Below, piece after piece: positions 1,772-23,166 of a DNA stretch of 23,511 bases. The notes beneath the pieces are model-generated. The model worked only from the letters and a program-made list of their open reading frames with translations. It did no database searches and was not told where the DNA came from. The position numbers were made by a program, and so were the translations under genes. The DNA lies in NCBI GenBank assembly GCA_002269645.1, contig NIVC01000603.1:1-23511 (forward strand), read 5' to 3'. Source of the DNA: Macrostomum lignano. Its lineage: Eukaryota. Every line of letters starts with the position of its first letter. Positions within the stretch are counted from its first letter, which is position 1.

Positions 1772-2325
1772 ACAGCACGGTAACGAAGGTTGAAACTCGA
1801 GTGGAGTTCGCCTGGCAGGTGTAGCTGCCGGAGTGCTGCCGCAGCGCCCTGTTGATCCGCAGCTCCGGGCCCGCACTGCAGTTCCCATCTGGTTGGCACA
1901 GCTGCATGCCGCTTGTGTTGTTACCAATGATCTCCGAACCATTGAAGTACAGCGTGCAGCTCACTGCAAAACTGTCGTTCTCGGCTGCTGTTTGCGCATG
2001 CGAGGATGCTGAAAATGCAACACGTTATGGTTGCTTTTGTCTATTAATTGTATTTAAATATGGAGACAAGCAATGACACTCAGCTCACACAGCACTGTGA
2101 CGGAAGTTGACTCTGCGGCAGAGCCAAGCTGGCAGGTGTAGAGGCCAGAGTGCTGCGACTGTGCCTTCACAACCGACAGCTTCCGGGTTTTCGTGCAGTT
2201 TCCGTCTGGTTGGCACAGCTGCAGCTGCCTTGAGTTCGTGCTCAACTCCGTGCCGTTGCATAGAATGCATGAGCAGCTCACGTTGAAGCTTTCGTTTGCA
2301 GCAACAAGTTGGTCTGTCGATGGCA
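1772..2325 (-). other. Two tandem Ig-superfamily exons, 237 nt each, phase 1-1
   Basis: B-strand F.VSC, F-strand HSG.YTCQ and G-strand T.VTVL in both; both share QLCQPDGNC. Confidence 0.85.
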
Positions 2326-3938
2326 CTGCAAATCAAGTCATATAAATTTATACTTTAATGCTATAATGCTATTTACCGTGGGAGTTTTCGTGTCATTCAT
2401 GACCCATGAAGGCCAGCCCCCAATGCACAGAGAGTGCACAAGCCTGATGACTAGAAAGTCAGGCCAAAGCTCACAATATTATCAGATATTTTCATGCCAC
2501 TTTTGAGGCTTCTCTGGTCTTCAAGTGCTTTGGAAAAGTCCACAGCCTCACCCAGGCGCACTGTCTGCAGCGTCAGATCTGAGACGCTCAGATAGCCGTA
2601 GTCTCTGGATGAGAAGCTCAGGCTGACGTTTCTCCTGAGGAGCAGATACCGGACCTGGGATGTTGCACTCAACATTTTGAGATCCGAGTGAGATGAACTA
2701 ATTAAGCACATAATCTCTGTAGCATCAATGCTCACCTCTGCAAGACAGTCCACCATGTAGAGCCCACCACGCGTGCTACTCATCGACCTATTTGTAGTGA
2801 CACCGCAACGCTTCCAACTGCTCCGGTATTTATTAAACTGTTTGCTCATATTTTTTGAGTTGCAATGGTTGCCAGAAAACAGTTGCTCCTCTGAGTTCGA
2901 AGTCCAGATCTCGATGCCAGCTGAGCTGCGGAACATTTCAGCATCCGAGAAGACTGAAATTATTGCCAGAACAACGAGATTGTAAAAATACCGGAAGAAA
3001 GAGGGTTTCAGGAATGCTGCTACCTCAGTTATTTTGTTTCAAAAAGCAGCTGCTGTTTTTTATGAAACCAACCAACTAGCCAAGAGTCCTGCTTGGACTC
3101 AACCGCAGGGACATCAGGGCCGTGACCATGGACCTCTCGGGTCATGGCTGTTTTGCCAGGCATCGTTACCTTCAGGAAAAATCCGTAGCGAGGAATGATG
3201 CCCTTTCTGCCTCTCCGGTGTCGAGAATGCGGAGCACTTCATCTGTGAATGCTCCGCCTTTACTCAGGACAGCCTTCACCTACCTCGGCCAAACCCGGAC
3301 CTCTCCGACGTTTTCAGGCCCGAGAATCTCTGCCAGCTCGTCCGCTACCTAAGGGCTACCGCGCTGCGGACACTGGCACCACCGGATCTCCCTGCAGAAC
3401 ACCGCAGCACCAGCTTCCCTGGTCGCCAGGGGTTCGCAAAATGGGCGGCGACGCCTCGCTGCATCCGGATGCCCGGACCCCTGAAGCTATGTCAAGTAAG
3501 TTAACCAACTAGTCAATCAGTGCTTCATAAAACTGGTCTGTGGTGTAACTCACCCTCGCTGTCCTTCACTGTCACAGAACCGATGAGCACTGACTCACTC
3601 AGCTGCACAGCGAACCAGTGAAATCCGCTATCGTTAAAATGCTTTTTGTCATTGCTGTGAATGAACTGAAAACTTTGGCTTGTGTTCAGAACATTGCTCT
3701 CATTCAGCTGGTCTCTCTCGTGAAAGCAAGAATAGGAATAAGAGGACTGCCAGGCGTTGAGTACAGTCTTGTTGCGAATCGGCACCTCACCTGCAACATA
3801 GGAACTTGAGAAGTTAGAAATCCATTTCGCTTGAAAAAACACCCTGGAGGGTTTAAAAAGCTTTCACTTACAGTCGCAGCGACAGGTAGCGATGCAGAGC
3901 ACAGCCCCTAACAGGGATATCAGCGTTGCAGCTTCCAT
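1772..3938 (-). CDS. Receptor copy B, exons 1-6 (3' part outside window): signal peptide + F-type-lectin-like domain + 2 Ig domains, ~355 aa
   Basis: Exons 3938-3872, 3790-3554, 2920-2736, 2654-2552, 2325-2089, 2008-1772. All introns GT..AG with matching phases (1,1,0,1,1) and no stops; three are 80-81 nt. N-terminus MEAATLISLLGAVLCIATCRCD is signal-peptide-like; at least 15 N-x-S/T sequons. Confidence 0.85.
2552..3790 (-). other. Divergent F-type lectin / F5/8 type C-like domain (exons 2-4 of copy B)
   Basis: Order of motifs NAWQSS ... FIHS ... HWFAVQL....IGSVTV ... GIEIWTSNS ... C ... VRYLLL ... YLSVSDLTL parallels the FTLD pattern A.QSS / THT / WW.VDL / V.I.NR / EI.VG / GRYV / L.LCEV.V. 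By-eye match only. Confidence 0.5.
3080..3502 (+). mobile_element. 5'-truncated non-LTR retrotransposon (3' end of ORF2, LOA/R1/I-like CCHC region) in intron 2 of copy B
   Basis: 10-bp TSD AACCAACTAG at 3070-3079 and 3503-3512. Across frameshifts it translates [22 protein letters not shown]...[21 protein letters not shown]...LVRYLRAT; ends in AAGTAAGT. Confidence 0.85.
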
Positions 3939-4559
3939 GAGACACTTGCTGATCACTTCAAAGCAATTCTGCCGTTAGTACAACAAGCGCAGCAAAAAGA
4001 ATCCATTTTGTGTCGTGGCTTTTTTATATGGCTGCAGAAACCATTGATGCGGGGCTGCAGTCGCAAGTTCTGTTCCGGCAGGTGGTGACTACAAGTTCCA
4101 TCTGTGTATAAGACTGCAAGTTGAAACAAAATGTTTACAAACTCTCTGTCTGGCTGCAGCTTAGCCAAACTGAACTTGGCTTGGAATAAGCGACGAAAAT
4201 CATATTTGGGTTTCCTGGCTCCGATGGGTCGGGGACTGAGTTTGCTTGGCCGTCTCTGCAGGTACAAATGTCGCATTATGTAATTTAACAAATGACACCA
4301 CTTGAACATATTCTTTTGTTTCAAGAAAAATGGATATGAAGTATGATGAGAAATGATCTGGATGAAGACTCGGAAAATCCGATTAAATTTAACAAACTTT
4401 TACTGTTAACAGACTGAAATATCATTCAAAAAGAATATTTGATTTCAATTAATCAGTTTAGAAAGAAGAGAAAGCATTGATACAAGCGTAGGGACAAATT
4501 GGAATGAATTATCGATATTCGGCTATTGATTAAGTTTAAAATCTTTCATACGCACGTAC

Positions 4560-6220
4560 ACGGATTCATGTATTCTCACAGTTACACTTGCGCTCTCACA
4601 AGGTGTCTGATCGTCAGGCATGTACAGCCCGCGTTTGTAAGCCCAGATGAGTTGGGGGTCGTTTAAGCCGCCTTCAAACGCACCAGCACAAATCACATGT
4701 CATCACACTGAAATTGGCCTCATTATCAATTACACGGTGCACTCGCTCTCAGATTCCCAGTTAATCGTTGAGACCGAAAGCGCAGCCGGAAGCTCTGAGC
4801 ATAGCTGTACTCCAGGGGGGTTGCTGGGCTCAAGGGGTTGCTGGGGATGAACTTTTGGGAAACGAAGTTACGAAATTGTTTGAGCTTTCCAGATACCAAA
4901 TAGGCACTTTGTATTTGCTTAAACCAACAAGAAAATTGAGCCTAAATGATACGCATCCGTATGTACCATCAGTAGGTACCATGGCGGAGCCAGCATCTTG
5001 AGGTTCTTCATCTGCGGCTGCTTGCTGTGTGGCTTTCAAAGAATTGCGAAGTCGGCTGCAATTTAGCTGCACACGCTGCTGTTCTGTTCCAAGTTCAGCT
5101 CGAGTCGCCGTCACTTCAGACAGGTTTTGGCAGGTCTTCGGCCTCAACACAGTGATAGACAAGTTCGACGGAGGGTTTGCATAGGAAGGCCAAATCGGTA
5201 ATTGCTTCACAGTTGAACACAGAATGCTCTCAAAACAGGGATCGGCCTCTTGCTCGATAAACATCTCACTCAGCAACAGTGACAGAAGCTGCCCTAGAGG
5301 ACATTCTGTTTCTCAAACTTAGCAGATCTTGTCTCTGTGCCATTCTTAGCAGATCTTCTCAATCTGCTCGGTTCTTGCAGGATCTTCTAAGATGGGAGGT
5401 ACATTTGTTTTGTTATTCATGTGGCTAAAGTGTTCTAGCTGAACTAATATTTTATTTTATTACAAAATGGGACAATAAATTTAAGAAAATATGCGATTCG
5501 AAGCTATAAAAAATATAAAAGCTAAGATCTTGTACGATGTAGCAAGTCGCACAGATCTGGTAAGTTTACCTAAGTATTATTATAGCGAAGATCTTGCACG
5601 TTCTTGCAAGTACTTGCGCAGCAACCCAAGAAGATAGACAAGATCTGCTAAGAATCAACAAGCCAATGTCTTCTAGGGTGAGCTGTTAGCAGAGCCCAGC
5701 TGGCAAGTGTCGCGTCCTGTGTTCCGAGTGCTGCGACTTTCAGTTGTAGAGAGGCGGCTGTGGGCACCCTGACGCACTTTAAGCGACATTGTCACACAAC
5801 CGGCGAGAGGCATTTCTGCCCATTCCGCTGACTCCCCTGAGCAGGCACACAAGCGCGCGGATACGTACGCAGTCATACGCACAGGCACACACTCACACAG
5901 GAGTGTACAGCGGCCCTAACTTTATTTATCGTCAGGCATTTACACTTCACTGTGCCTTGTGGGTTGGCACTCAAGGGCGTAAATTGCACGAGCAGAGCCA
6001 AGTCGAGATTCCAATTTAGCCCAAATTTGATGTGACTGCACTTGGAATCGAGCCTGGGCCGCTGGCACATGAGAGACCACTAGGATGCGGCCTCCCCTGC
6101 TGCCGTGACTGGGTTGACAGAGCTGCAGATTGCTGTTGAACTCTGAGTCGTTGCAGTATGCAGTGAGCAGTTCACCGTTGTGTTTGGGTTCACAGCTTAC
6201 TTGTGAGTGAGTAGGAATGG
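4560..6220 (-). pseudogene. Decayed third paralog fragment of the receptor (Ig-like and stalk exons)
   Basis: Remnants QVSC...NSNLQLCQP (from acceptor at 6221), TCQLGSANSSASVTV (split by MITE), PPSNLSITVLRPKTCQNLSEV (matches copy A exon 7 PPSSASISVLNLPTCESSSDV; acceptor reads AA at 5177-5178 instead of AG), GGLNDPQLIW (~4645-4670). Outer boundaries approximate. Confidence 0.7.
5292..5678. mobile_element. 387-bp non-autonomous DNA transposon (MITE), CMC/EnSpm-like
   Basis: TIR CCCTAGA(G/A)GACATT (13/14) plus inner 17-bp perfect inverted repeat CTTAGCAGATCTTGTCT; several subterminal AGATCT-core motifs; 2-bp TSD TG (5290-5291, 5679-5680). CMC elements have CAC/CCC termini and 2-4 bp TSDs. Confidence 0.8.
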
Positions 6221-6566: not shown

Positions 6567-7041
6567 AAATCGAGGTCGTTTTGACCCAGAAAATTGTGTA
6601 AATCGAGGTCGTCTTGACCCAGAAAATTGTGTAAATCGAGGTCGTCTTGACCCAGAAAATTGTGTAAATCGAGGTCGTCTTGACCCAGAAAATTGTGTAA
6701 ATCGAGGTCGTCTTGACCCAGAAAATTGTGTAAATCGAGGTCGTCTTGACCCAGAAAATTGTGTAAATCGAGGTCGTCTTGACCCAGAAAATTGTGTAAA
6801 TCGAGGTCGTCTTGACCCAGAAATAAGTGTAAATCGAGGTCGTCTTGACCCAGAAATAAGTGTAAATCGAGGTCGTCTTGACCCAGAAATAAGTGTAAAT
6901 CGAGGTCGTCTTGACCCAAAAATAGTGCAAATCAAAGTCTTGTTGACTCAGAATAGGAGTCTGGAGTAGGGAGAACTTGAGGTCGTGGAGACCCAGAATA
7001 GGAGCCTGAGATAGGGGAAACTAGAGGTCGTGCAGACCCTA
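6567..7041. repeat. 33-bp tandem repeat (11 units, 6567-6929) grading into diverged 32-bp and 45-bp units
   Basis: Unit AAATCGAGGTCGTCTTGACCCAGAAAATTGTGT; units 1-7 carry AAAATT, units 8-10 AAATAA; distal units keep the GAGGTCG..GACCC core. Confidence 0.97.
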
Positions 7042-7490
7042 AGAAAGCCGTACAAGCTAATAATAGATATTAGGCGCTAAGGAATTAGGCAATAGGGGGC
7101 TATCGTTGGACACCCTTGATCCTCGGAAAACTTTCGGACTTTCGGACTTAGTTAGGGAACCGCTCGGGCACTAAACGCTATCACGAGGCTCTTTTAAGAA
7201 AACCGCGTGAACTAGAGATTTGTAGGAAAGAATCATAGTTTGGGGCATTCAACGCTACTTAAAGTAGACTATTAGGGGATTAATCGGTAGGATTTTAGCT
7301 AGGAACAAATAGGTATGTTACATTATTATTAAGCATCTTCGCTTAATGATGAAACTTCATTAAACTAATTATTTCAAACAGACAGGAACAGCTGAACTTT
7401 ATTCGAAACTTTGCTTGATTGCCTCGAACAAACAGACGCGAATTTAATTTTAAACAGCCTCAGTTTGTGGTCTTTCTACATGTACTGCAG

Positions 7491-7587
7491 GTTATGATGT
7501 AATTTTAGCATTTTTTAAACCGGTTCTACTGCTATGGCCTTCAATCGGCATTGTTGCATTGTTAATTTGGTATTATGTTAATAAAAA
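7491..7587 (+). other. Possible orphan exon encoding a transmembrane segment
   Basis: ACTGCAG| acceptor, |GTAAGT donor at 7588; open frame YDVILAFFKPVLLLWPSIGIVALLIWYYVNK. AT-rich DNA readily yields hydrophobic peptides; partner exons not established. Confidence 0.3.
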
Positions 7588-8196
7588 GTAAGTTGAGTAA
7601 TTAAAAAATAAAATTTAATAAATAAATATATATAATATGTATAGAATAATATAACAACAACAACAACAACAGAGTACGCTGCCGGATCACAAAAGCAACG
7701 TCAGATTAATATATTAATTATTAATTAATATAAAATAAATTTACCAAATTTTATATCCCAAATTTTGGTATGGTGTTATAAATTTGATCAAATGAAAAGT
7801 CAGTCTAATGAAAAAAATGTTTAAAACATCAAGAGACCTTCAGTGTTTAGCCTTTGTATTTTAGGCCAGATATGATGTAGTAATGTAGCTTCGAACAGAT
7901 AGGTTTTTTGCATTATCTATTACTATTGTATATAATACAATGTTTATTGGCAAAAAGGTGAATTGTGAATAAATTCTGAAAAAACTATCAAAAGAATTTT
8001 GCTTCTGTATCAAACAGATCAGGTGATATTGGTAATTGTACTGTCGGCTTCAAAACTGCTTTACAGTATTCGGGAGTGCTGCGTCCTTATTTCTAATGTG
8101 TATCAAGCGCAGTAAAATAAAATATATTGGCCTATGAGTACGGTAAATATAGCTCTGGGATAAACACATCCTCATGAACTGAGAACAATAAATCGA

Positions 8197-11100
8197 ATTA
8201 GGCTCAGGATCAGGATCAGGATTAGGATCAGGATCAGGATCAGGATCAGAATCAGGATCAGCATCAGGATCAAGATCAAGATCAGGATCAGGATCGTGAG
8301 CGGGATCAGGATCATAAGCGGGATCAGGATCAGAATCAGGATCAGCATCAGGATCAAGATCAAGATCAGGATCAGGATCGTGAGCGGGATCAGGATCATA
8401 AGCGGGATCAGGATCATGAGCGGGATCAGGATCAGGATCGGGAGCGGGATCAGGATCAGGATCAGGATCAGGATCAGGACAAGATCAGCATCGGGATCAA
8501 AATCAGGATCAGGATCAGGATCAGGATCAGGACCAGGATCAGGACCAGGATCAGGATCAGGATCAGGATCAGGATCAAGATCAAGATCAGGATCAGGATC
8601 AGGATCAGGACACGATCAGAATCAGGATCAGGATCAGGATCAGAATCAGGAACAAGATCAGGATCAGGATCAAGACAGGATCAGCATCAGGATCAAAATC
8701 AGGATCAGAATCAGGATCAGGATCAGGACAGGATCAGGATCAGGATCAAAATCAGGATCAGGATCAGGATCAGGATCAGGATCAGGATCAGGATCAGGAC
8801 ACGATCAGGATCAGGATCAGGATCAGGATCAGGATCAGGATTAGGATCAAGATCAGGATCAGGATCAGGTTCGGGATCAGGATCAGGATCAGGATCAGGA
8901 TCAGGTTCGGGATCAGAATCAGGATCAGGATCAGGATCAGGATCGGGATCAGGATCAGGATCAGGATCCAGGATCAGGATCCAGGATCAGGATCAAGATC
9001 AAGATCAAGATCAGGATCAGGATCGGGATCAGGATCAGGACAGGATCAGCATCAGGATCAAGATCAGGATCAGGATCAGGACAGGATCAGGACCAGGATC
9101 ATGAGCGGGATCAGGATCATGAGCGGGATCAGGATCATGAGCGGGATCAGGATCATGAGCGGGATCAGGATCAGGATCGGGAGCGGGATCAGGATCAGGA
9201 TCAGGACAGGATCAGGACCAGGATCAGGATCAGGATCAGGATCAGGACACGATCAGAATCAGGATCAGGATCAGGATCAGAATCAGGAACAAGATCAGGA
9301 TCAGGATCAGGATCAGGATCAGGATCAGGACAGGATCAGCATCAGGATCAAAATCAGGATCAGAATCAGGATCAGGATCAGGACAGGATCAGGATCAGGA
9401 TCAAAATCAGGATCAGGATCAGGATCAGGATCAAGATCAGGATCAGGACACGATCAGGATCAGGATCAGGATCAGGATCAGAATCAGGAACAAGATCAGG
9501 ACAGGATCAGCATCAGGATCAAGATCAAGATCAGGATCAGGATCGGGAGCGGGATCAGGATCAGGATCAGGATCAGGATCAGGACAGGATCAGCATCAGG
9601 ATCAAAATCAGGATCAGGATCAGGATCAAGATCAAGATCAGGATCAGGATCGGGAGCGGGATCAAGATCAGGATCAGGATCAGGATCAGGACAGGATCAG
9701 CATCAGGATCAAAATCAGGATCAGGATCAGGATCAGGATCAGGATCGGGATCTGGATCAGGATCAGGATCAAGATCAAGATCAGGATCAGGATCGGGATC
9801 AGGATCAAGATCAGGATCAGGATCAGGTTCGGGATCAGGATCAGGATCAGGATCAGGATCAGGTTCGGGATCAGAATGAGGATCAGGATCAGGTTCGGGA
9901 TCAGAATGAGGATCAGGATCAGGACACGATCAGGATCAGGACAGGATTGGGACAGGATCGGGACAGGATCAGGATCAGGATCAGGATCAAGATCAGGATC
10001 AGGATCAGGATCGGGATCAGGATCAGGATCAGGATCAGGATCAGGATCAGGATCAGGATCAGGATCGGGAGCAGGATCAGGATCAAGATCAGGATCAGGA
10101 TCGGGATCAGGATCAGGATCAGGATCAGGATCAGGATAAGCATCAGGATCAGGATCAGAATCAGGATCAGGACCAGTATCAGGATCAGGATCAGGATAAG
10201 CATCAGGATCAGGATCAGAATCAGGATCAGGACCAGTATCAGGATCAGGACCAGTATCAGGATCAAGATCAGGATCGGGATCAGGATCAGGATCAGGATC
10301 AGGATCAGGATCAAGATCAAGATCAGGATCAGGATCGGGATCAGGATCAGGATCAGGATCAAGATCAAGATCAGGATCAGGATCGGGATCAGGATCAGGA
10401 TCAGGATCAGGATCAGGATCAGGATCAAGATCAAGATCAAGATCAGGATCGGGATCAGGATCAAGATCAGGATCAGGATCAGGTTCGGGATCAGAATCAG
10501 GATCAGGATCAGGACACGATCAGGATCAGGACAGGATTGGGACAGGATCGGGACAGGATCAGGATCAGGATCAGGATCAGGATCAAGATCAGGATCAGGA
10601 TCAGGATCAGGACAGGATCAGCATCAGGATCAAGATCAGGATCAGGATCAGGATCAGGATCAGGATCAGGATCAGGATCAGGATCAGGATTAGGATCAAG
10701 ATCAGGATCAGGATCAGGTTCGGGATCAGGATCAGGATCAGGATCAGGATCAGGTTCGGGATCAGAATCAGGATCAGGATCAGGATTAGGATCAAGATCA
10801 GGATCAGGATCAGGTTCGGGATCAGGATCAGGATCAGGATCAGGATCAGGTTCGGGATCAGAATCAGGATCAGGATCAGGATCAGGATCGGGATCAGGAT
10901 CATGAGCGGGATCAGGATCATGAGCGGGATCAGGATCATGAGCGGGATCAGGATCAGGATCGGGAGCGGGATCAGGATCAGGATCAGGACAGGATCAGGA
11001 CCAGGATCAGGATCAGGATCAGGATCAGGACACGATCAGAATCAGGATCAGGATCAGGATCAGAATCAGGAACAAGATCAGGATCAGGATCAGGATCAGG

Positions 11101-13759
11101 ATCAGGATCAGGACAGGATCAGCATCAGGATCAAAATCAGGATCAGAATCAGGATCAGGATCAGGACAGGATCAGGATCAGGATCAAAATCAGGATCAGG
11201 ATCAGGATCAGGATCAGGATCAGGATCAGGATCAGGATCAGGATCAGAATCAGGAACAAGATCAGGATCAGGATCAGGATCAGGATCAGGACAGGATCAG
11301 GACAGGATCAGCATCAGGATCAAGATCAAGATCAGGATCAGGATCGGGAGCGGGATCAGGATCAGGATCAGGATCAGGATCAGGACAGGATCAGCATCAG
11401 GATCAAAATCAGGATCAGGATCAGGATCAAGATCAAGATCAGGATCAGGATCGGGAGCGGGATCAAGATCAGGATCAGGATCAGGATCAGGACAGGATCA
11501 GCATCAGGATCAAAATCAGGATCAGGATCAGGATCAGGATCAGGATCGGGATCAGGATCAGGATCAGGATCAAGATCAAGATCAGGATCAGGATCGGGAT
11601 CAGGATCAAGATCAGGATCAGGATCAGGTTCGGGATCAGGATCAGGATCAGGATCAGGATCAGGTTCGGGATCAGAATGAGGATCAGGATCAGGACACGA
11701 TCAGGATCAGGACAGGATTGGGACAGGATCGGGACAGGATCAGGATAAGGATCAGGATCAGGATCAAGATCAGGATCAGGATCAGGATCGGGATCAGGAT
11801 CAGGATCAGGATCAGGATCAGGATCAGGATCAGGATCAGGATCGGGATCAGGATCAGGATCAGGATCCAGGATCAGGATCCAGGATCAGGATCAAGATCC
11901 AGATCAAGATCAGGATCAGGATCGGGATCAGGATCAGGATCGGGATCAGGATCAGGATCAGGATCAGGATCAGGATCAAGATCAAGATCAAGATCAGGAT
12001 CAGGATCAGGATCAGGATCAGGATCAGGATCAAGATCAAGATCAAGATCAGGATCGGGATCAGGATCAAGATCAGCATCAGCATCAGGATCAAAATCAGG
12101 ATCAGGATCAGGATCAGGATCAGGATCGGGATCAGGATCAGGATCAGGATCAAGATCAAGATCAGGATCAGGATCGGGATCAGGATCAAGATCAGGATCA
12201 GGATCAGGTTCGGGATCAGGATCAGGATCAGGATCAGGATCAGGTTCGGGATCAGAATGAGGATCAGGATCAGGACACGATCAGGATCAGGACAGGATTG
12301 GGACAGGATCGGGACAGGATCAGGATAAGGATCAGGATCAGGATCAAGATCAGGATCAGGATCAGGATCGGGATCAGGATCAGGATCAGGATCAGGATAA
12401 GCATCAGGATCAGGATCAGAATCAGGATCAGGACCAGTATCAGGATCAGGATCAGGATAAGCATCAGGATCAGGATCAGAATCAGGATCAGGACCAGTAT
12501 CAGGATCAAGATCAGGATCGGGATCAGGATCAGGATCAGGATCAGGATCAGGATCAAGATCAAGATCAAGATCAGGATCAGGATCAGGATCAGGATCAGG
12601 ATCAGGATCAAGATCAAGATCAAGATCAGGATCGGGATCAGGATCAAGATCAGGATCAGGATCAGGTTCGGGATCAGAATCAGGATCAGGATCAGGACAC
12701 GATCAGGATCAGGACAGGATTGGGACAGGATCGGGACAGGATCAGGATCAGGATCAGGATCAGGATCAAGATCAGGATCAGGATCAGGATCAGGACAGGA
12801 TCAGCATCAGGATCAAGATCAGGATCAGGATCAGGATCAGGATCAGGATCAGGATCAGGATCAGGATCAGGATTAGGATCAAGATCAGGATCAGGATCAG
12901 GTTCGGGATCAGGATCAGGATCAGGATCAGGATCAGGTTCGGGATCAGAATCAGGATCAGGATCAGGATTAGGATCAAGATCAGGATCAGGATCAGGTTC
13001 GGGATCAGGATCAGGATCAGGATCAGGATCAGGTTCGGGATCAGAATCAGGATCAGGATCAGGATCAGGATCGGGATCAGGATCAGGATCAGGATCCAGG
13101 ATCAGGATCCAGGATCAGGATCAAGATCAAGATCAAGATCAAGATCAGGATCAGGATCGGGATCAGGATCAGGACAGGATCAGCATCAGGATCAAGATCA
13201 GGATCAGGATCAGGATCGGGATCAGGATCAGGATCAGGATCAGGATCAGGATCATGATCAGGATCAGGATCAGGTTCGGGATCAGGATCAGGATCAGGAT
13301 CAGGATCAGGTTCGGGATCAGAATCAGGATCAGGATCAGGATCAGGATCGGGATCAGGATCAGGATCAGGATCCAGGATCAGGATCCAGGATCAGGATCA
13401 AGATCAAGATCAAGATCAGGATCAGGATCGGGATCAGGATCAGGACAGGATCAGCATCAGGATCAAGATCAGGATCAGGATCAGGATCGGGATCAGGATC
13501 AGGATCAGGATCAGGATCAGGATCATGATTAGGATCAGGATCAGGTTCGGGATCAGGATCAGGATCAGGATCAGGATCAAGATCAAGATCAAGATCAGGA
13601 TCAGGATCGGGATCAGGATCAGGATCAGGATCAGGATCAGGATCAGGATCATGATCAGGATCAGGATCAGGTTCGGGATCAGGATCAGGATCAGGATCAG
13701 GATCAAGATCAAGATCAAGATCAGGATCAGGATCGGGATCAGGATCAGGATCAGGATCA
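8197..13759. repeat. (GGATCA)n hexamer satellite, ~5.6 kb, with higher-order repeats
   Basis: Continuous GGATCA units with recurrent variants (GGATCG, AGATCA, GGACA, GGTTCG, ATGAGCGG, ATTGGG) that recur in blocks. Confidence 0.99.
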
Positions 13760-13779
13760 CTTTGACAGCCTGAAAACCC

Positions 13780-14636
13780 TCAGGTCACGTAGACACCAGT
13801 AGCATCCTCCAGGTTGTAACCAGAGTTCTCATACTCCATGACAGCAGAAACGGTAGCAACCGGTGCTCCAGATCCGGGCGTCTCGGATCGATCAGACTAA
13901 AGCGAAAAGAGTTCGAACTTTAGCTGTCACAGTTTGAGTCGACTGTACAGATTGAGAAAATCAAAGCTTACCATTGGAATAGTTTGTTTTGTCCACGACT
14001 TCTTTTCTCTGAATTTGATGACTGCAAACTGAAGTTAGCAGATGCAACACGGCAGCTTAGAGCACAGAGACGGAAAATATAATGTAGAGAGAGGGGTTAC
14101 TCACCGAGCCCAAGACAAGCAAGAGCACACTTAGCAGAGCAGTTGCTGTTAGAAATCCGTACAGGAACTGTGAAATGTACATGTGTAAGGACTTCACATC
14201 ACGTTTGATGAGACCTTTGTGATTGCCGCAGCTGTAGCAAGCTGAGGCCCTGTGCTCGGCCTTGAACCGGATCTCCGGCGGCAGATTCTGCACTGCGCTG
14301 CACTCGACGAGGCCCACAAGCCACTCTGAGCTCAGCTTCCCCCGATCGCCAGTGCCCACGTGCTGACCCAACCGTCTCCACTCGAGCTCTGGAATTGATG
14401 AAGCTCGCTGGTCAGCATGTCAGCGCATAGTCACTCATAGTGTGAAAGTGCAAAATGCAAGCAATTTACAAATGACAGCTGCGTGAGGTTTCGCACTTCC
14501 AATCCGCCACCAACAGCGCCGCATCTGTGCTCGGGCACTGGTAGAGATGCAGACGATGCGAACTGTACCAATACGTCGGATGAGCTCTCGCAGGTTGGCA
14601 GATTGAGTACAGAAATTGATGCGCTTGATGGCGGGT
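13780..14636 (-). CDS. Receptor copy A, exons 7-10: Ig-like stalk, TM helix, basic stop-transfer cluster, Tyr-containing cytoplasmic tail
   Basis: Exons 14636-14470, 14407-14105, 14028-13972, 13896-13780; introns 62, 76, 75 nt, GT..AG, all phase 0. Product ...FLYGFLTATALLSVLLLVLGS|FAVIKFREKKSWTKQTIPM|SDRSETPGSGAPVATVSAVMEYENSGYNLEDATGVYVT*. Exon 7 joins exon 6 in phase 1 to give the typical TVL-Y-PP Ig linker. The exon 7/8 junction is the least certain. Confidence 0.8.
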
Positions 14637-14984
14637 CTGTGAGCGTATTAAAAAGGGGAATGGAGTTCATCAAGTTCGATCAATAAGCTTTTCAGTTATC
14701 GAATTAAGGCGGATTTATTGGTTAATTTGGCTGGGCCAGACTTCTGCACAGCAGATGTTTGCACAGCAACTTTTTTGCAAATAAGAGGGATGATTGAGCT
14801 TAAATAATAACTGGTCCGGCCGGGCGTAGCTTGGTTGGGTGTTAAACCAGTGGGGGTGGCTCTTGTGCGTTGGTGCAGGGGGTGGTGGGCCGGGCCTTTG
14901 GTCCCGTGCCCCGGTTTATGTGCCTTTATTTAATGTGGGGCGGGCTGCCTATGGCCTGCCAAGTGCGTATCGATTCTTTTTGCA

Positions 14985-16045
14985 ATGGCGGACCGCGTGA
15001 AACTCATGCACCTGAGCAAGGTGGCTCTGCAAGCCTTGTGTGCCCACGCTAATGTAAGCAGTCGGGCAATAAGGCCGACCTTGTCAGCGCCTTGCTCGCG
15101 GCCCCAGACCAGTCGTGAACAGACTCGCTATTGCAGAACATGGAGCAATATGAGCAAGAAGCCGATGCAGACGACAACATCAGTACGGAGGCGGCTCGGG
15201 AGTCGGCGGCGGGCCTGGACGAGGACATCGCGAAGGTGGAAGAGGAGATCAGACTGTTGCAGCTACACAAGGAAGCCGCTAAACTCAAGAGGGAGATCGG
15301 AGATCTGCAACGCGAGTGTCCATCCTATGAATCGCGGTGAGTGTGCCAAGCCTGCTGCCCCCAGTTGCTTTCCTGAAGTGTGGGATGATGCTGGATTAGA
15401 CCAGGAAGATAATGGCAATGAGCTGCTTGGTAGATTGTTGTCACGGAACAGGGCTAATGAACGGATGGAGTGTTCGGGCAGGCGTAAGGCTCTCCTGATT
15501 CGTGATTTCCTTGACGGCTTTGAGCAGAAAGAGGTGCTGGCTAATGATTTTGGTGGCCGAATCACTTACAAGAGCAGAAAACATAATAGCATCACAGCAG
15601 CGCAGTATTTGGTAGGCAATGGCAGGCTGATGATGCAAATGATCAAGGATGGTGCCCTGGTGACTAATAGGAATGGAATTGCCGACACGACTGATTTGAT
15701 GAATCACCTACGCTACTCAATACAGATAGGCGAGCTGTTTGACGCGGGCTTCGGCCTTGCTCAGGTGAACCGTTTTGAAGAGGACTAACGCACTAGGCAA
15801 GCTGAAACTGGTATGTGCTGGGCAAGGAGTCTTTCCAACTCGTTGCTAAGCACTTAATCAGAACTGAAACTCGAGCAAACCATGGAGTCAGCAAGTCATT
15901 GCCCCAGCCATGGCAGCAGCGTTTTCAAAACCAATAGACCCCAAGAGCCTCAGAACGGCAGACGGGCTAGAGATCTACTTGCACTTCAAGCTGCAAATTC
16001 CGACATGTTTGCCGTATCTGTTTTGAGGCCCACCATGAGGCGAAC
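14985..16045 (+). pseudogene. gag-like ORF1 with N-terminal SAP-like motif, coiled coil and C-terminal Cys/His knuckle; disrupted
   Basis: LSKVALQALCAHANVSSR/GNKADLVSALL (frameshift ~15065); LDEDIAKVEEEIRLLQLHKE; KALLIRDFL; FEED*RTRQAETGMCW (TAA 15786-15788); CKFRHVCRICFEAHHEANH (15992-16045); TGA at 15116-15118. Confidence 0.75.
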
Positions 16046-16069
16046 CATTCGACAAGAACTGAACTCTGC

Positions 16070-17427
16070 GAAGCTGCAAATTAAGGAAGAGACTGAGAAT
16101 GGCAGATACGTGGTGGTGCCTGAGAAGCCGACGATGGTCAGCCCTCTGGGAGCTATTCCCAAGGATAACAGGAAGGTTCGACTTATTCATGACTGCAGCA
16201 CGCCTCCGGCTACTCGGTAAAAGACACTTATACGAGGAAGCTGAGCCCTAAGTTTGAGTCCGTCAAGAAGGCTGCAGCCTCTATCGGCAAGGGCTGGTTC
16301 ATGGCAAAGCTTGATTTGTCGCAAGCTTACAGAAGTGTGGCGATTCATCCGGATGATTACCAGGCGACTGGCATTGGTTAGCGCTTTAAAGGCAACCGTG
16401 ATCTGACATGGCTAATCGACACCCGGCTACCCTTTGGTAGCTGCGCCTCGGTCGAGATTTTCTACCGGCTTACTCAAGCGGTCAAGAGGATGATGGTGCG
16501 ACCGGTGTGGCCAATAGTTCGGTCTACCTGGATGATTTTCTGGTTGCGGCCGAGAGCGAGGAGGAGTGTATGGATGCCCTGAAAGAACTGATGAAGTTGG
16601 TTCGCCAGTTGGGTTTTGGTGTCAATTGGAACAAAGTGGTTGAACCTACGCAATGCTTGGTGTATCTCGGTGTGAAGATTGATACTGTCCGTGGAGTTCT
16701 TAGTGTGCCGGCGGGAAAGTGTGAGGAAATGCGCACCACACTGCTTAATTTCTCGCAGAGCAGGCGTCTCTCGAAACGCCAGCTTTCGTCGCTTTGTGGC
16801 AAGCTCAGCTGGGTCGTCCAAGTGGTGCACGCTGGGAGTTGCTTCCTCAGGCCCCTGTTCGACTTGCCTAATGCCCTGGAAAAGCCACATCACAAAGTAC
16901 GAGTGTCCGCTGACACTGTGCGTATTTTACTCTGGTGGCGCGGTGCCCTTCTGAAGCTGCCTGATTTTCAGCTTTGGAGAAGTCGCACAAACGGCTGGAT
17001 CATCGAAACCGATGCCAGCAGTGCTGGTGGTGGTGCCATTTTGCGCAATGGTAGCGGAATGATGGATTGGCTGTATGTCAATTGGGATCTGGATGCTGGA
17101 GGAAAGTTTAAAGACAAGCATATCACGTACAAAGACGCTATTGTTCCGCTATTGGCTATGGTTCGCTGGAGTGTCTTTTTAAATGACGGTTCGGTCGTGG
17201 TCTACTACGGTCGTAGTCGCGGCTGTTGGTATGATAACAGAGGTTGCTGCCGGCAGCCTGAGTTGCAGCCGCTGTTCCAGACTGCCATGCTCATTGCTGT
17301 TAGGCGTGGGGTTGAGGTGCGCACTTTTCATATGCCTGGCTGGTGCCTCGTTTTTGCGGACCCGTGCTCTCGGCTGCACGCGGTAGGCAAGATGCGCGAT
17401 TTTTATTTTGAGTGTATGGCACTGTAA
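16070..17427 (+). pseudogene. Reverse transcriptase + RNase H (DIRS/Ngaro type), disrupted
   Basis: VSPLGAIPK..VRLIHDCS, KLDLSQAYR, RLPFGS, YLDD (16525-16536), YLGVKID, TDASSAGGGA, ADPCSRL; frameshifts near 16200 and 16500, TAG at 16379-16381. Confidence 0.95.
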
Positions 17428-17479
17428 ACTGCTGTTTTAATGAAATCGCCAGCCATGCTTTCTGCCCTGCTGTCTCCGT

Positions 17480-18508
17480 TCGGCCCTGCTGGCCCCACAC
17501 AAAGCGGAGTTACCGGTCGCAGCTCGCGTCCTGGCTGTGTTTTTGCAACTCCTAGCACTTGACACCGGTGCGCGCGCAGCCGGTGCACGTGGCCGTGTAA
17601 GTGGCCGAGTTGTCCACCCGGCTGTCAGTCTTTCGGAGTTGCCAGGCGTACGCTAACGCGGTCTCGCTGTACTTCAGAGCCCTCGGTCGGCCGGACCCGT
17701 GTGAGTCGCCGATGGTTAAGCTGGTGCGTTGTGGTCTGTGGTCTTCGCTGATGTCTCAGTCGGTAGCAGTGCTCAAGGGAGCCCCTCAGAATCGCAGATC
17801 TCCTCAAGCTGAACGCCCACCTGGACCAACGAAAGAAGAGTGACATCGCGTTCTGGGCAGCTGTTCTGGCAGCCTGGTGGGGTATGCTGCGGAAAGCGAA
17901 TGTGATCGGATGCAATCGGAGCGGCTAGATCTGTGGTGCAACCTGGCGGCATCAAACATCGTCTTTTCAAAGTGCGACTGTGAGCTCACCGTACGGCATT
18001 CAAAGACCAACCAGTTTGGCGACCGAGTTCAGCGAGTGTTTCTTCCGAAACTGCCTGATGGGAGCTTGGGTGTCCTGTGCCCGTTCCGTGCGCTCGAGCG
18101 GCAGCTACGGACAAACCGAATCGGCCAGGCGCCGCGTCCGGTTCACCTGTTCTCCACGTGGTCGGCAACGGGATGTTTGCCTCTGACGGCTAGCAGGTTT
18201 GATGGCCGGCTTCGCACTCTGTACACATCGGCGGGTTTGTCACCACGTGAGTTCACTAGCCACAGGCTGCGCGCGCGCGCGGCGCTACAGCAGCCATGCA
18301 GCTCGGTGTTCCACTGCTGATGATCATCAAGAAGCTGGGTGACTGGAAGGACAACTCGGTGTTTCGCTACCTATCTGTTCGGGATTCGGATACAAGGGCG
18401 GCTGTGCATGGCTTGTCTCGCCGGGTTAGCGCGCTCCAACTCTCTCTCTGTCGAACTTTCTTGGTTTGGATTGGCCAGGCTCGAACCTGCCCGTCTCGTG
18501 CCAACTGA
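17480..18508 (+). pseudogene. Tyrosine recombinase, disrupted
   Basis: All catalytic motifs visible across frames: MLRKAN (R 17890), HSKTNQ (K 18003), SHRLR (H 18261, R 18270), LGDW (W 18344), FRYL (Y 18368); two N-terminal stops and several frameshifts. Start approximate. Confidence 0.93.
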
Positions 18509-18922
18509 CTTGACTATATCTCATTGGTTTGATGTAACCACGCTCTGGTCGCGGGATAGGGCATGGGAACTTTTTCGAAGGTGCCTCCTATCCCGTGCAC
18601 CTCCCCTGCGCAGAGCTGTCGAGACTCGGTTAGGTCTCCGGCCAGGCCTGGAGACTCCCGCTCTGCTGCACCCTCCTGCTGCCTTGACTCCGTCTCCCCT
18701 GCCGCCACACCTGCCTTTCCGGAGCTCCCTATCCCTCTCTGTACCTCCCCCCTCTACCTTATCTCCCCTGCGCTCCACCCTAGTCTTCTTGTACTTTCCC
18801 CATCCCCCCTCTCTTTGTCTCTCTCTGAACTATTTTCCTGCTCTGTCCCCTCTTTCTCTGCGTCTACTTACAGTATTTTGTGTGCTCATCGACCTCCCAT
18901 CCCTTCCCAAACTCCCAAACGG

Positions 18923-19472
18923 TGACGCAAGTCGTGTGACCCCTTCTTCCCCTCGATGACTCATCGATGACTCATCCCCCTCTCTTGCGCAACCTTTTCT
19001 CATGCTATTGTTTTCCTCCCCAAATTTCTCATGCGACACCCACCCCACCTCCGCTTCTATTGTTCTCGTTTTTGATTCTTTTGTTCTCTTTACCCCCACC
19101 AATCATCACATTTTCTCCGATTTTCTCTTTCTTTTGTTCTCGTTTTCGCACCTAATTATCACCTTTTCTCCAATGTTTGCTTTTCTATTGTTCTCGATTC
19201 TCCCCAATTATCCCCGATTTCCAATTCCTTTGTTCTCGACCCCAGCCCTATTGTTCTCAATGTTTGCTTGCGCAACACTTTCGCAACCACCCGCTGCGCC
19301 AATTATCCCCCCACCCCACCTCCGGATTGCGCAATTTCCCTATTTCTCATGTTGCTATGCCGGTCTCATGTTTCTCATCATGACTCATTCTGACGTCATT
19401 CGGCCGGCAGCCAATCAGAGAGAGGGAGCCATGGAAACGACCTTGGAGCGGCGGCTGGGAAGGCTATAAAAG
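18923..19472 (+). promoter_or_regulatory. Enhancer/promoter in the solo LTR: bZIP sites, CCAAT box, TATA box
   Basis: ATGACTCAT at 18956, 18967, 19380; TGACGTCA 19391; TTGCGCAA 18985, 19268, 19327; TGACGCAA 18923; CAGCCAATCAG (CCAAT 19411); TATAAAAG 19465. Confidence 0.75.
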
Positions 19473-19798: not shown

Positions 19799-20949
19799 GT
19801 GCAGCTGCCGGTAAGTTCCTGTTACTGATTTGTGCTCTAATTGCCTTTGCTTATCCGGGGTTTGCCTATTTTCCATTGTCTGATTAGAGGGCTGAGCCAG
19901 TTGTGATACCGTACCTTTTGCTGTATTTTTACTCAATAGTGAAGCCGCCTAATTGCCTGGTTATTTGCCTAAGGGCCTAATTATTAACTATTAACTAACC
20001 TCATCATTATTCACTCTTTCACCATCATTTCACTCATGGCTTGCTAAGCCTTTCTCCCGGGGTGGCAAAGCATAGGGAAGTTTGGGTAAGTTAATGGCCT
20101 CTCCCCGTGCAAAGCTCGTCTGTGAGTGCGTGCTGCGGGGCCGTGTGTGCGTGCAGTAGAGGGATTAGCGAGTCTTGGCACAGAATGGCAGTAGGAAGGT
20201 TGCAACCCCCATGCTGACGCGTCCCTTCGCCCTGAGCAATCTAAACTAGAGACAGTAGATGTTCGCCTCATACTACTCTTAGTAATCAAAGTCGCAAGTC
20301 AGCCTCGCTCACAGCCACAAAGGATCCCCTGCTGAGAAATCCTCCAGATTGAGCCCAGAGTTCCCGATCATGCCCCAAGCAGAGTCCCTGTACTCGGCTG
20401 CATGTGTCTCCCCTGTTAGCCTAAATCTCCTGGTAACCACCCCAGGCGGGGCTCTAGCCTCGAGAGGTCTGGTAGAAAGATCCAGGTGCGCCAGGTCACA
20501 TAGAGTGGTGGCAGCCTTTGCTGCAGGTTTTGCACCTTGGCTGCAGGTGGGGTCCATGTGGGTCCTTGGCCCTCTGGTCACGAAGCACTACCAAAGCTAT
20601 CAATCATGTGGACGGGACAGTCTGGTGCTGGAGGTCCGTCAGGTCATTGCCCGGTCATAGGCAGCCTACGGTCATTGCCCCTCTCTCGTCTCCCCCCCCT
20701 CGTTCGTCTCTCTACGGAGCGGACAGGCGACAAGGGCGGTTACATCAGGTTTAAAAGCACAAAAAAAAAAACAACAACAACAACAACAGCAGCAGCAACA
20801 ACAACACAACGACATCATCATCTGTATCACAAGCTATTTAGTCAAGTGGAAACTTATTTTCTAAGTTTCTGTTGGGCTATAACAAACATTTCAGATGAGT
20901 TAAAGGGCCTTTCTTTATCCATTCAATTTCAAATTGAAATGAAACTCAC

Positions 20950-23166
20950 ACAGCACGGTAACGAAGGTTGAAACTCGAGTGGAGTTCACCTGGCAGGTGT
21001 AGCTGCCGGAGTGCTGCCGCAGCGCCCTGTTGATCCCAGCTCCGGGCCCGCACTGCAGTTCCCATCTGGTTGGCACAGCTGCATGCCGCTTGTGTTGTTC
21101 CAATGATCTCCGAACCATTGAAGTACAGCGTGCAGCTCACTGCAAAACTGTCGTTCTCGGCTGCTGTTTGCGCATGCGAGGATGCTGAAAATGCAACACG
21201 TTATGGTTGCTTTTTGTCTATTAATTGTATTTAAATATGGAGACAAGCAATGACACTCAGCTCACACAGCACTGTGACGGAAGTTGACTCTGCGGCAGAG
21301 CCAAGCTGGCAGGTGTAGAGGCCAGAGTGCTGCGACTGTGCCTTCACAACCGACAGCTTCCAGGTTTTCGTGCAGTTTCCGTCTGGTTGGCACAGCTGCA
21401 GCTGCCTTGAGTTCGTGCTCAACTCCGTGCCGTTGCATAGAATGCACGAGCAGCTCACGTTAAAGCTTTCGTTTGCAGCAACAAGTTGGTCTGTCGATGG
21501 TACTGCAAATCAAGTCATATAAATTTATACTTTAATGCTATAATGCTATTTACCGTGGCAGTTCTCGTGTCATTCATGACCCATGAAGGCCAGCCCCAAT
21601 GCACAGAGAGTGCACAAGCCTGATGACTAGAAAGTCAGGCCAAAGCCCACAATATTATCAGATATTTTCATGCCACTTTTGAGGCTTCTCTGGTCTTCAA
21701 GTGCTTTGGGAAAGTCCACAGCCTCACCCAGGCGCACTGTCTGCAGCGTCAGATCTGAGACGCTCAGATAGCCGTAGTCTCTGGCTGAGAAGCTCAGGCT
21801 CACGTTTCTCCTGAGGAGCAGATACCGGACCTGGGATGTTGCACTCAACATTTTGAGATCCGGGTGAGATGAACTAATTAAGCACATAATCTCTGTAGCA
21901 TCAATGCTCACCTCTGCAAGACAGTCCACCATGTAGAGCCCATTACGTGTGCTACTCATCGACCTATTTGTAGTGACACCGCAACGCTTCCAACTGCTCA
22001 GGTACTTATTAAACTGTTTGCTCATATTTTTTGAGTTGCAGTGATTGCCAGAAAACAGTTGCTCCTCTGAGTTCGAAGTCCAGATCTCGATGCCAGCTGA
22101 GCTGCGGAACATTTCAGCATCCGAGAAGACTGAAATTATTGCCAGATCAACGAGATTGTAAAAATACCGGAAGAAAGAGGGTTTCAGGAATGCTGCAGTG
22201 ATTTAGTTTCATAAGCGAACCGATGACTTTAGGGTTAAATTACAGCATCCAGCTTAGACAGTCAATAAAAAGCAGCTGCTGTTTTTTATGAAATCAACCA
22301 ACTAGCCAAGAGTCCTGCTTGGACTCAACCGCAGGGACATCAGGGCCGTGACCATGGACCTCTCGGTCATGGCTGTTTTGCCAGGCATCGTTACCTTCAG
22401 GAAAAATCCGTAGCGAGGAATGATGCCCTTTCTGCCTCTCCGGTGTCGAGAATGCGGAGCACTTCATCTGTGAATGCTCCGCCTTTACTCAGGACAGGCT
22501 TCACCTACCTCAGCCCAAACTCGGACCTCTCCGACGTTTTCAGGCCCGAGAATCTCTGCCAGCTCGTCCGCTACCTAAGGGCTACCGCGCTGCGGACACT
22601 GGCACCACCGGATCTCCCTGCAGAACACCGCAGCACCAGCTTCCCTGGTCGCCAGGGGTTCGCAAAATGGGCGCGCGACGCCTCGCTGCATCCGGATGCC
22701 CGGACTCCCTGAAGCTATGTCAAGTAAGTTAACCAACTAGTCAATCAGTGCTTCATAAAACTGGTCTGTGGTGTAACTCACCCTCGCTGCCTTCACTGTC
22801 ACAGAACCGATGAGCACTGACTCACTCAGCTGCACAGCGAACCAGTGAAATCCGCTATCGTTAAAATGCTTTTTGTCATTGCTGTGAATGAACTGAAAAC
22901 TTTGGCTTGTGTTCAGAACATTGCTCTCATTCAGCTGGTCTCTCTCGTGAAAGCAAGAATAGAAATAAGAGGACTGCAGGCGTTGAGTACAGTCTTGTTG
23001 CGAATCGGCACCCCACCTGCAACATAGGAACTTGAGAAGTTAGAAATCCATTTCGCTTGAAAAAACACCCTGGAGGGTTTAAAAAGCTTTCACTCACAGT
23101 CGCAGAGACAGGTAGCGATGCAGAGCAGAGCCCTAACAGGGATATCAGCGCTGCAGCTTCCATCAT
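20950..23166 (-). CDS. Receptor copy A, exons 1-6 (signal peptide, lectin-like domain, 2 Ig); frameshifted as assembled
   Basis: Exons 23166/23163-23098, 23016-22782, 22096-21912, 21830-21728, 21502-21266, 21184-20950 with the same splice sites as copy B. Five 1-bp deletions versus B (exon 1 x1, exon 2 x2, exon 6 x2). About 570 aa with exons 7-10 if corrected. Confidence 0.75.
22306..22730 (+). mobile_element. Duplicate of the 5'-truncated LINE, intron 2 of copy A
   Basis: Same 10-bp TSD AACCAACTAG at 22296-22305 and 22731-22740; near-identical to 3080-3502. Confidence 0.85.

Follow-up and report, generated by a model that had tools for sequence, protein, structure and literature searches.

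A probable tandem cluster of lectin-fold, immunoglobulin-like and tyrosine-tailed membrane glycoproteins in Macrostomum lignano, a candidate family of recognition receptors

Which kind of gene family is encoded on contig NIVC01000603.1 of the flatworm Macrostomum lignano (assembly GCA_002269645.1), and could its members serve recognition at the cell surface? The stretch analysed here, positions 1 to 23,511 of that contig and referred to as the window, had been interpreted from its letters as a tandem cluster of lectin-like, immunoglobulin (Ig)-like, tyrosine-tailed receptors of an immune or allorecognition locus (the original prediction). From the analysis described below, the window probably contains part of a tandem cluster of a family detected only in Macrostomum, the members of which are type I membrane glycoproteins with a lectin-fold head, Ig-like domains and a tyrosine tail, with a role that may lie in immunity, reproduction or adhesion. 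Architecture and conservation, as far as they can be judged from sequence, support a cell-surface recognition receptor that would signal through its tail tyrosines.

The window consists of repeat-rich eukaryotic DNA, and all coding signal relevant to the cluster lies on the minus strand. Self-BLAST identified one large direct duplication of about 2.7 kb, with 93.7% identity including gaps over 2730 columns (coordinates of all features in Table 1). Each duplicate block contains six AG/GT-bounded exons encoding a signal peptide, an N-terminal domain of about 185 amino acids and two Ig-like domains. The gene at high coordinates is called copy A and the one at low coordinates copy B; the same-strand paralogous units proposed earlier were thus recovered as direct duplicates, and the proposed bounds coincide with the end of copy B exon 5 and the ATG of copy A. 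Copy B had been described as open and leaving the window, and all six of its exons are open, with AG/GT borders throughout. The introns bounding its domains are in phase 1, in line with the consistent splice phases reported before.

The head differs from the original prediction by an additional intron within its large exon. In copy B, this exon holds a stretch of 81 nt (2655-2735) that is in frame and contains no stop codon. The stretch is an intron, although the sequence alone is insufficient to show so: UniRef model P0001 splices it out, and an intron occupies precisely this position in the paralogues P0027 and P0013, which also share the exon 2 of 237 nt (handles of this type denote homologous proteins). 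The GenBank models of P0027 and P0013 were derived from a genome-guided RNA-seq assembly (PMC5730564). Copy B exon 2 shows 80-87% nucleotide identity to the paralogues of a second locus, L001, described below.

As a basis for the protein analyses, a composite of 574 amino acids was assembled from copy B exons 1-5 and the repaired 3' exons of copy A. It starts with a hydrophobic signal (hydropathy) and has a single transmembrane (TM) helix at about residues 497-521, followed by KFREKK. All of its 18 NxS/T sequons are located upstream of this helix, in the ectodomain, and a tail of 52 amino acids with three tyrosines ends in ...EYENSGYNLEDATGVYVT before the stop codon. Signal peptide, TM segment and three-tyrosine tail were therefore found as predicted, as were the two Ig domains. 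The two exons of 79 amino acids each matched Pfam Ig_2 in two stretches (28.6 bits against a cutoff of 27, E=1.7e-6), both carry VSC...YTCQ, and 36/36 weak PDB matches were proteins of the immunoglobulin superfamily (IgSF), among which the alignments to Fc-gamma-RII span both domains. The element formerly called a stalk is really the first half of a conserved membrane-proximal domain of about 125 amino acids with four invariant cysteines (alignment with P0005, P0012 and P0019); the earlier gene model had skipped its second half (14388-14168).

The window gene, P0005 and P0012/P0019 all share the tail motif (E/D)YENSxYxLExAxG(V/I)Y(V/I)x-COOH without variation, although these proteins are only 37-42% identical over their C-terminal half; such conservation argues for a function of the motif. 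Other paralogues end differently, with TVYLEI (P0027), TEYLEI (P0028) or TEYLDI (P0023). Tails were scored against the immunoreceptor tyrosine-based inhibitory, switch and activation motifs (ITIM, ITSM and ITAM), written as (S/I/V/L)xYxx(I/V/L), TxYxx(V/I) and YxxL/I-x6-8-YxxL/I, and these three paralogues fit the ITSM, as a match to the consensus only.

A head is common to all members. Its landmarks are WQSS..CF..YxFFHS.., followed by GIEIWTS..FSGDHC..MSxQF..W..CGV...VxC..VRxLLLR...MSFADLxLQT, and paralogues with 30-55% protein identity elsewhere retain 80-87% nucleotide identity in the core GFHWFAVQL...VTVK. Pfam searches with single exons and with the spliced protein gave marginal Ig matches only and nothing for the head, and PDB sequence searches with the head alone, a family profile or P0027 gave no head match. 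Three paralogues gave sub-threshold matches to PF00754 (F5_F8_type_C), each over the same stretch (E=0.0054, 0.18 and 0.18), with the best score for P0027 (17.3 bits against a cutoff of 28.2) and about 12 bits for P0005 and P0019; the window protein yielded no match to PF00754.

A single-sequence AlphaFold model of the head had a predicted local distance difference test (pLDDT) score of 31. With a family alignment of 21 sequences, AlphaFold2 reached a predicted template modelling score (pTM) of 0.67 and a mean pLDDT of 65. The query was UniRef P0001, the last 33 residues of which are intron read-through, and the low-confidence part of the model consists mostly of these 33 junk C-terminal residues and two loops. 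Foldseek against the PDB returned 93 matches at E<=1e-3, of the galactose-binding-domain-like jelly-roll class, including CBM32 modules, F5/8-C chitobiase domains and the F-type lectins 3cqo, 2j1r and 3le0. Among the matches listed, target-normalised template modelling scores were 0.56-0.67, and the F-type lectins had E-values from 3.5e-5 to 4e-4. F5/8-C domains were found in a viral library as well. The head model thus has a fold of the F5/8-C type, as had been anticipated. As modelled, the head is F-type-lectin-like at fold or superfamily level only, and it is treated here as a new sequence family within the galactose-binding-domain fold class. A histidine after the conserved cysteine is present in the window subfamily and not family-wide. 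Directly before the core strand, a DG pair is found in the family (..ADGGFHWF / ..AVDGFHWF), where the window copy has NDSGFHWF. The DG pair may correspond to the cation-binding motif h2DGx of F-type lectins, although its position and flanking residues fit that consensus imperfectly.

Automatic UniRef names of P0001-P0030 are in conflict with each other and comprise Fibrinogen C-terminal, MATH, Sushi, CUB, Ricin B-type lectin, Coatomer zeta, Pep_M12B_propep and Ig-like. Apart from the Ig-like one, these labels found no support from Pfam in the members checked. The fibrinogen label, the UniRef name of P0001, was rejected, as there was no Pfam fibrinogen match at E<=10 and the fold is galactose-binding-domain-like. 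MATH, Sushi, CUB and Ricin-B were rejected for the same fold and for lack of Pfam support in the members checked (P0001-like head, P0027 and P0028).

How far is the family distributed? The window proteins are 88-98% identical to the M. lignano UniRef entries P0001, P0003 and P0004, and a word-seeded search of 5.8e9 proteins returned one cluster, from Macrostomum lignano. HMMER with P0001 against 1.84e9 representative proteins gave 15 matches, nine of them at E<=1e-10; the sources looked up were all M. lignano, save one metagenome contig of 1.6 kb from JGI. A profile search of 5.8e9 proteins gave 10 matches, 10/10 from M. lignano. No orthologue was found at E<=1e-3 in planarians, parasitic flatworms or any other animal in these protein searches. 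The sole homologue from outside M. lignano, P0017 (L003 284-919; JGI 3300040801, contig Ga0450804_0569779), has 30% identity and is a single uninterrupted open reading frame (ORF) over positions where the M. lignano genes hold introns; its contig may be transcript-derived or may come from a different flatworm.

Within M. lignano, the architecture of members varies, from zero Ig-like domains in P0005 and P0027 to two in the window copies. Locus L001 (NIVC01002544.1, Mlig_3_7 assembly) contains three divergent paralogues in tandem on the same strand and a fragment on the minus strand, so that tandem clustering is a property of the family and not just of the window. Together, the window and L001 bear out the proposed invertebrate multigene family of receptor-like proteins, in tandem clusters with intact, broken and relic copies. 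The L001 cluster is located about 9 kb downstream of a gene for a protein kinase of 1091 amino acids (features at L001 1-1137 and 15990-16590), and in one of its paralogues a (TAGA)n-type microsatellite fills the intron that splits the membrane-proximal domain. A head fragment was also identified at residues 1993-2088 of P0016 (UniRef A0A1I8I140), a model of 2224 amino acids named 'RNase H domain', so that at another place in the genome a different retroelement is fused to, or interrupts, a member of the family; the retroelement part of P0016 is not common to the window.

The gene had been left unnamed by the original prediction, and no family name was found in the databases or papers searched. 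Searches for papers on lectins or Ig proteins in M. lignano, on the gene identifiers and on F-type lectins in Platyhelminthes gave nothing relevant, and the identifiers were absent from the supplements of the other M. lignano papers examined. The family is present in databases solely as uncharacterised or mislabelled proteins and is not described in the papers searched. The members could be ordinary cell-adhesion molecules, homophilic or matrix-binding like discoidin-domain proteins, without a role as recognition receptors. A discoidin-fold head together with IgSF domains is common in adhesion proteins, and the weak PDB matches include contactins, Dprs and MDGA1. However, neither HMMER nor the profile search found an orthologue outside Macrostomum, let alone the single-copy one that a known adhesion molecule would have provided, large copy number and high divergence are unusual for core adhesion molecules, and the conserved tyrosine tail suggests signalling. 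This alternative is thus very unlikely.

Are the genes of the window intact? Copy A had been taken as complete. All ten exons are there, yet the copy is not intact as assembled. Compared to copy B, five deletions of 1 nt were found in exons 1, 2, 2, 5 and 5, each of which breaks the frame. Compared to the paralogues, a sixth 1-nt deficit lies in exon 7, in a run of five G near 14340-14346, where one additional G restores the frame. An alternative acceptor of exon 7 at 14167 would leave a mini-exon with the TM helix only, and a model joining exon 6 to this acceptor stays open but drops half of the conserved domain. The six deletions may be real or assembly errors, and may also be allelic differences; a uniform assembly error is disfavoured because copy B has none in about 1100 nt. 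UniRef model P0001 shares most diagnostic residues of copy A without the exon-2 frameshifts, but differs from it at the first residue and may therefore derive from a third copy.

The 3' exons of copy A are located 6.3 kb downstream of exon 5, whereas the equivalent of this intron in two paralogues is about 90 nt long. The intron harbours a degenerate retroelement with a gag-like ORF, a reverse transcriptase ORF and a possible tyrosine-recombinase ORF, which suggests an element of the DIRS/Ngaro type, with a tyrosine recombinase. Terminal repeats were searched for and none were found.

For copy B, similarity to copy A extends about 150 nt below 1772 before a satellite takes over, and the copy consequently exits the window without membrane-proximal, TM and tail exons. 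The 34-bp satellite begins about 220 nt below its last visible exon. Copy C, situated between a hexamer array and copy B, had been described as decayed, which was confirmed: it is a relic with weak but consistent, collinear matches to family exons, namely two Ig-like halves (6167-6075 and 5756-5688) and the start of the membrane-proximal domain (5177-5109). Head, TM segment and tail of copy C were not found by tblastn. UniRef model P0003 contains a near-identical copy C relic fused to B-like exons, so that the C-B arrangement is also present in another assembly. The window thus displays a pattern of birth and death, in which one copy is open, another is disrupted and the third is a relic.

From these data, it is tempting to regard the window copies as dead or truncated by-products of segmental duplication, with A as a pseudogene, B as a 5' fragment that lacks TM segment and tail, C as a relic and the functional members elsewhere. 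Six deletions in A against none in B and a retroelement in the 6.3-kb intron would fit. The duplicated block stops about 150 nt past exon 5 in both copies, which would mean that the duplication giving rise to B excluded the 3' exons. Substitution divergence between A and B is similar in coding (1.7%) and non-coding (2.4%) sequence, and the M. lignano assembly is highly duplicated and repeat-rich (PMC5730564). However, copy B is fully open with intact splice sites, its 3' exons may be located past the satellite and outside the window, and read-through of B would yield a secreted head-Ig-Ig protein, as in model P0003. P0001, from another assembly, has most residues of A without frameshifts where covered, and the deletions may thus be assembly errors or allelic. 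By-products of duplication are therefore a possibility with real weight, albeit one that we tentatively consider to be wrong.

In the interpretation considered probable here, the window contains part of a tandem cluster of receptors, and a family member is a type I membrane glycoprotein with a signal peptide, a beta-sandwich head of about 185 amino acids, zero to two short Ig-like domains, a four-cysteine membrane-proximal domain, one TM helix and a short tail with three invariant tyrosines. The head would bind a ligand, most plausibly a glycan, and the Ig-like and membrane-proximal domains would space it from the membrane. Engagement of the ligand could lead to phosphorylation of the tail tyrosines and recruitment of SH2 adaptors. 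YxN is a Grb2-type SH2 site. As both YENS-type and TxYL(E/D)I tails occur, signalling by the family may take more than one form.

Several observations weigh against such a receptor. No lectin profile matched the head significantly in the Pfam and PDB sequence searches, the confidence of the head model is only moderate, and the same fold occurs in non-lectin SUN, DOC and PITH modules according to Foldseek; glycan binding by the head is plausible as a guess from the fold. The fucose-binding motif of the F-type lectin domain (FTLD), HX24RXDX4(R/K) (PMC5712786), is absent from 8/8 family members, as determined by a regular expression with a spacing of 20-30 residues. The F-type-lectin-like head of the original prediction is therefore upheld by AlphaFold2 and Foldseek as to the fold and contradicted as to the fucose-binding motif. 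As assembled, the reading frame is interrupted in the sole window copy that has TM and tail exons, 3' exons may be missing from copy B entirely, and the genes of the window copies are predicted from sequence. The 18 codons that differ between A and B (10 non-synonymous and eight synonymous) are the only basis of a dN/dS of about 0.4; either constraint is weak, or there are too few changes to judge it. Finally, the tail tyrosines of the window gene (YENS, YNLE and YVT-COOH) fit no canonical ITIM, ITSM or ITAM.

What might such receptors recognise? Recognition of non-self by a cluster of immune or allorecognition receptors, diversified through birth and death, would account for the presence of intact, broken and relic copies in tandem clusters, for the combination of lectin-fold head, Ig-like domains and tyrosine tails, for the ITSM-consensus tails of some paralogues and for a family that is lineage-restricted and fast-diverging. 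M. lignano is a solitary worm, in which allorecognition has no obvious use. In addition, the head core is the best-conserved segment between paralogues and not hypervariable, and the window tail is not a canonical immune motif. An immune function is hence improbable. The label of an immune or allorecognition locus is unsupported by any evidence here, and allorecognition was put aside.

A role in reproduction, such as recognition or adhesion of sperm, egg or mating partner in the testis or the copulatory tail region with divergence driven by sexual selection, is also rather unlikely, but has a better claim. P0027 (BOX15_Mlig012084g1) is 44% identical to P0001 over 84% of the query, and the L001 genes Mlig012084.g1 and.g2 fall in the OrthoFinder group OG0000001 of Brand et al. 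2020 (PMC7336406). This membership was established for the P0027 gene and locus L001, and not for the window subfamily. The 158 transcripts of OG0000001, a count inflated by isoforms, stem from three species (M. hystrix, M. lignano and M. spirale), with at least 34 M. lignano entries and none from M. pusillum, and the mean protein divergence of the group is 1.30 (PMC7336406). Its expression is biased to adults over hatchlings in two species, and its positional annotation in M. lignano is mixed (non-specific, other, tail and testes) (PMC7336406). Brand et al. nominated reproduction genes by adult-over-hatchling bias and found such genes to be fast-evolving (PMC7336406). Adult bias, the 'Testes' and 'Tail' classes, absence from M. 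pusillum and high divergence are all consistent with reproduction, and F-type-lectin-fold domains serve gamete recognition in oyster bindins (PMC5712786). However, the group is annotated 'positional_mix' with non-specific members included, and the authors set such groups aside (PMC7336406); adult bias also fits many somatic adult tissues, and the argument is carried by P0027 rather than by the window subfamily. The expression summary of this orthogroup, a sparse one and the only one found, speaks for reproduction no less than for immunity.

In a bolder and accordingly doubtful interpretation, Macrostomum independently evolved paired receptors similar to Siglecs or KIRs, in which a conserved lectin-fold head is carried on variable Ig spacers and coupled to either a YxN-rich tail (activating or adaptor-recruiting) or an ITSM-like tail (modulatory), for discrimination of self from non-self or of mates and gametes. 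If so, a platyhelminth would have arrived convergently at a lectin-IgSF recognition system, with a new sequence family of this fold class, the galactose-binding-domain fold, as its basis. Recognition receptors of flatworms are poorly known, and the family is a concrete candidate that is genus-restricted and expanded (dozens of M. lignano entries in one orthogroup), with a head of a glycan-binding fold class forming its own sequence family and two kinds of strictly conserved tyrosine tail motif. As M. lignano is tractable by transgenesis and RNA interference, ligand, localisation and signalling are directly testable. A role in immunity or in mate or gamete recognition would add a new convergent receptor design of lectin head, Ig stalk and tyrosine tail. 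Otherwise, the window still illustrates clearly how birth and death can proceed in a very repeat-rich genome, through segmental duplication, insertion of a retroelement and invasion by a satellite.

Table 1. Annotated features of the 23,511-nt window, ordered by position
Feature	Position	Strand	Remarks
34-bp satellite (GGGCTGAGCCAGATCCAAGTTCGATGCTTTAATC)	1-1555		45.9 copies, 98% identity; reaches window edge
Duplicated block with copy B, promoter region and exons 1-5/6	1622..4251	(-)	self-BLAST against 20799-23511
Copy B exon 5, Ig-like domain 2, 79 aa	1772..2008	(-)	gene then exits window through satellite
Copy B exon 4, Ig-like domain 1, 79 aa	2089..2325	(-)	
Copy B exon 3b, end of head domain (VRYLLLRRN...LTLQTVRL)	2552..2654	(-)	
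Copy B exon 3a, middle of head domain	2736..2953	(-)	intron position kept in paralogues
Copy B exon 2, first part of head domain, 237 nt	3554..3790	(-)	AG/GT borders
Copy B exon 1	3872..3938	(-)	ATG and signal peptide (MEAATLISLLGAVLCIATCRCD), GT donor, phase 1; hydropathy
Copy C, decayed relic	5109..6167	(-)	tblastn; P0003 E=2e-12, P0005 E=0.002
33-bp tandem repeat	6567-6953		11.8 copies, 96%
Short 45-bp repeat	6945-7039		follows 33-bp repeat; then AT-rich stretch
Imperfect hexamer array (AGGATC)n	8200-13759		5.5 kb, about 933 copies, 86% match
Copy A exon 9, cytoplasmic tail ending MEYENSGYNLEDATGVYVT	13780..13896	(-)	stop TGA 13782-13780; motif kept in P0005, P0012, P0019
Copy A exon 8, stop-transfer and juxtamembrane segment (FAVIKFREKKSWTKQTIPM)	13972..14028	(-)	
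Copy A exon 7, second half of membrane-proximal domain (SSSGDGWVSTW...VECSAVQ...ACYSC), continuing into TM helix	14105..14388	(-)	
Copy A exon 6, first half of membrane-proximal four-Cys domain (PPSSASISVLNLPTC...EHRCG...NLTQLSF)	14470..14636	(-)	
Retroelement in copy A intron 5	14900..19400, extent approximate	(+)	RVT_1 E=1.2e-6
Gag-like ORF	14985-15788	(+)	inside intron-5 retroelement
Reverse transcriptase ORF, YLDD motif	16507-17427	(+)	RVT_1 E=1.2e-6
Possible tyrosine-recombinase ORF	17877-18320	(+)	weak Phage_integrase match, E=0.21
Duplicated block with 5' part of copy A	20799..23511	(-)	self-BLAST, alignment
Copy A exon 5, Ig-like domain 2	20950..21184	(-)	1-nt deletions 21099/21100 and 21036/21037
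Copy A exon 4, Ig-like domain 1	21266..21502	(-)	frame unbroken
Copy A exon 3b	21728..21830	(-)	frame unbroken
Copy A exon 3a	21912..22129	(-)	frame unbroken
Copy A exon 2	22782..23016	(-)	1-nt deletions 22977/22978 and 22789/22790
Copy A exon 1	23098..23166	(-)	ATG at 23166 and 23163; 1-nt deletion 23133/23134

Some additional observations concern the copies and their surroundings. The hexamer array starts about 20 nt past the stop codon of copy A, and a 3' untranslated region would enter it directly. The stretch 7001-8000 is AT-rich (GC 0.33). In intron 2 of both copies, a near-identical GC-rich block with plus-strand ORFs was found (3100-3500 and 22330-22730), which may be an embedded repeat or other element. 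Within the head, the codon at 2768-2770 / 21944-21946 (STR[G/N/V]GLY) encodes Gly in B, Asn in A and P0001, and Val in P0002 and P0003, and may be a variable loop position; a KDSE/KGSE site likewise differs among near-identical copies.

Finally, how does the family compare to known systems? F-type lectins share the jelly-roll fold, with MsaFBP32 of striped bass (3cqo) at rank 6 in Foldseek (E=3.5e-5). In these lectins, which also include the fucose-binding module of S. pneumoniae (2j1r), Drosophila furrowed/CG9095 and oyster bindins, landmarks follow a similar order of ..QSS.., Cys, a hydrophobic W-rich strand, V.V..., G.E.. and C. The FTLD can occupy the N-terminus of a membrane protein, and it can serve to recognise gametes or to tell self from non-self (PMC5712786). 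The head nevertheless differs from F-type lectins by the lack of a significant sequence match and of the fucose motif in 8/8 members, and CBM32 and F5/8-C domains match the head model equally well or better. The best structural matches (2j7m, 2j1a, 3ggl and 2v5d) belong to the discoidin / F5-8 type C / CBM32 group, which is also represented in DDRs and neuropilins. Like DDR1/2, the family places a discoidin-type head on a type I membrane protein, but has no kinase domain. The family has not kept the terminal Cys-Cys clasp that is typical of FA58C, as P0027 has no N-terminal Cys and a C-terminal Cys is missing.

SLAM/CD2-family and other ITSM/ITIM receptors are type I proteins of the IgSF, and the paralogues P0027, P0028 and P0023 fit their TxYxx(V/I) motif. 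In contrast, the window subfamily has the tail EYENSxYxLE...VYVx-COOH, and there is no homology to SLAM ectodomains. FREPs of snails are secreted and carry a fibrinogen domain, whereas the proteins described here are membrane-anchored and have none; both are lineage-specific, expanded invertebrate families joining IgSF with lectin-type domains. As functional analogues, Siglecs and in particular CD33-related Siglecs differ in that their head is a V-set Ig domain with a sialic-acid-binding arginine and not a galactose-binding-domain-like jelly roll, in their tail motifs and in having no sequence relationship to the family, so that any resemblance would be convergent. They combine, like the family described here, a glycan-binding-type head, C2-like Ig spacers, a TM segment and a short tail with tyrosine motifs, and form fast-evolving tandem clusters with pseudogenes in which related ectodomains are joined to different tail types.

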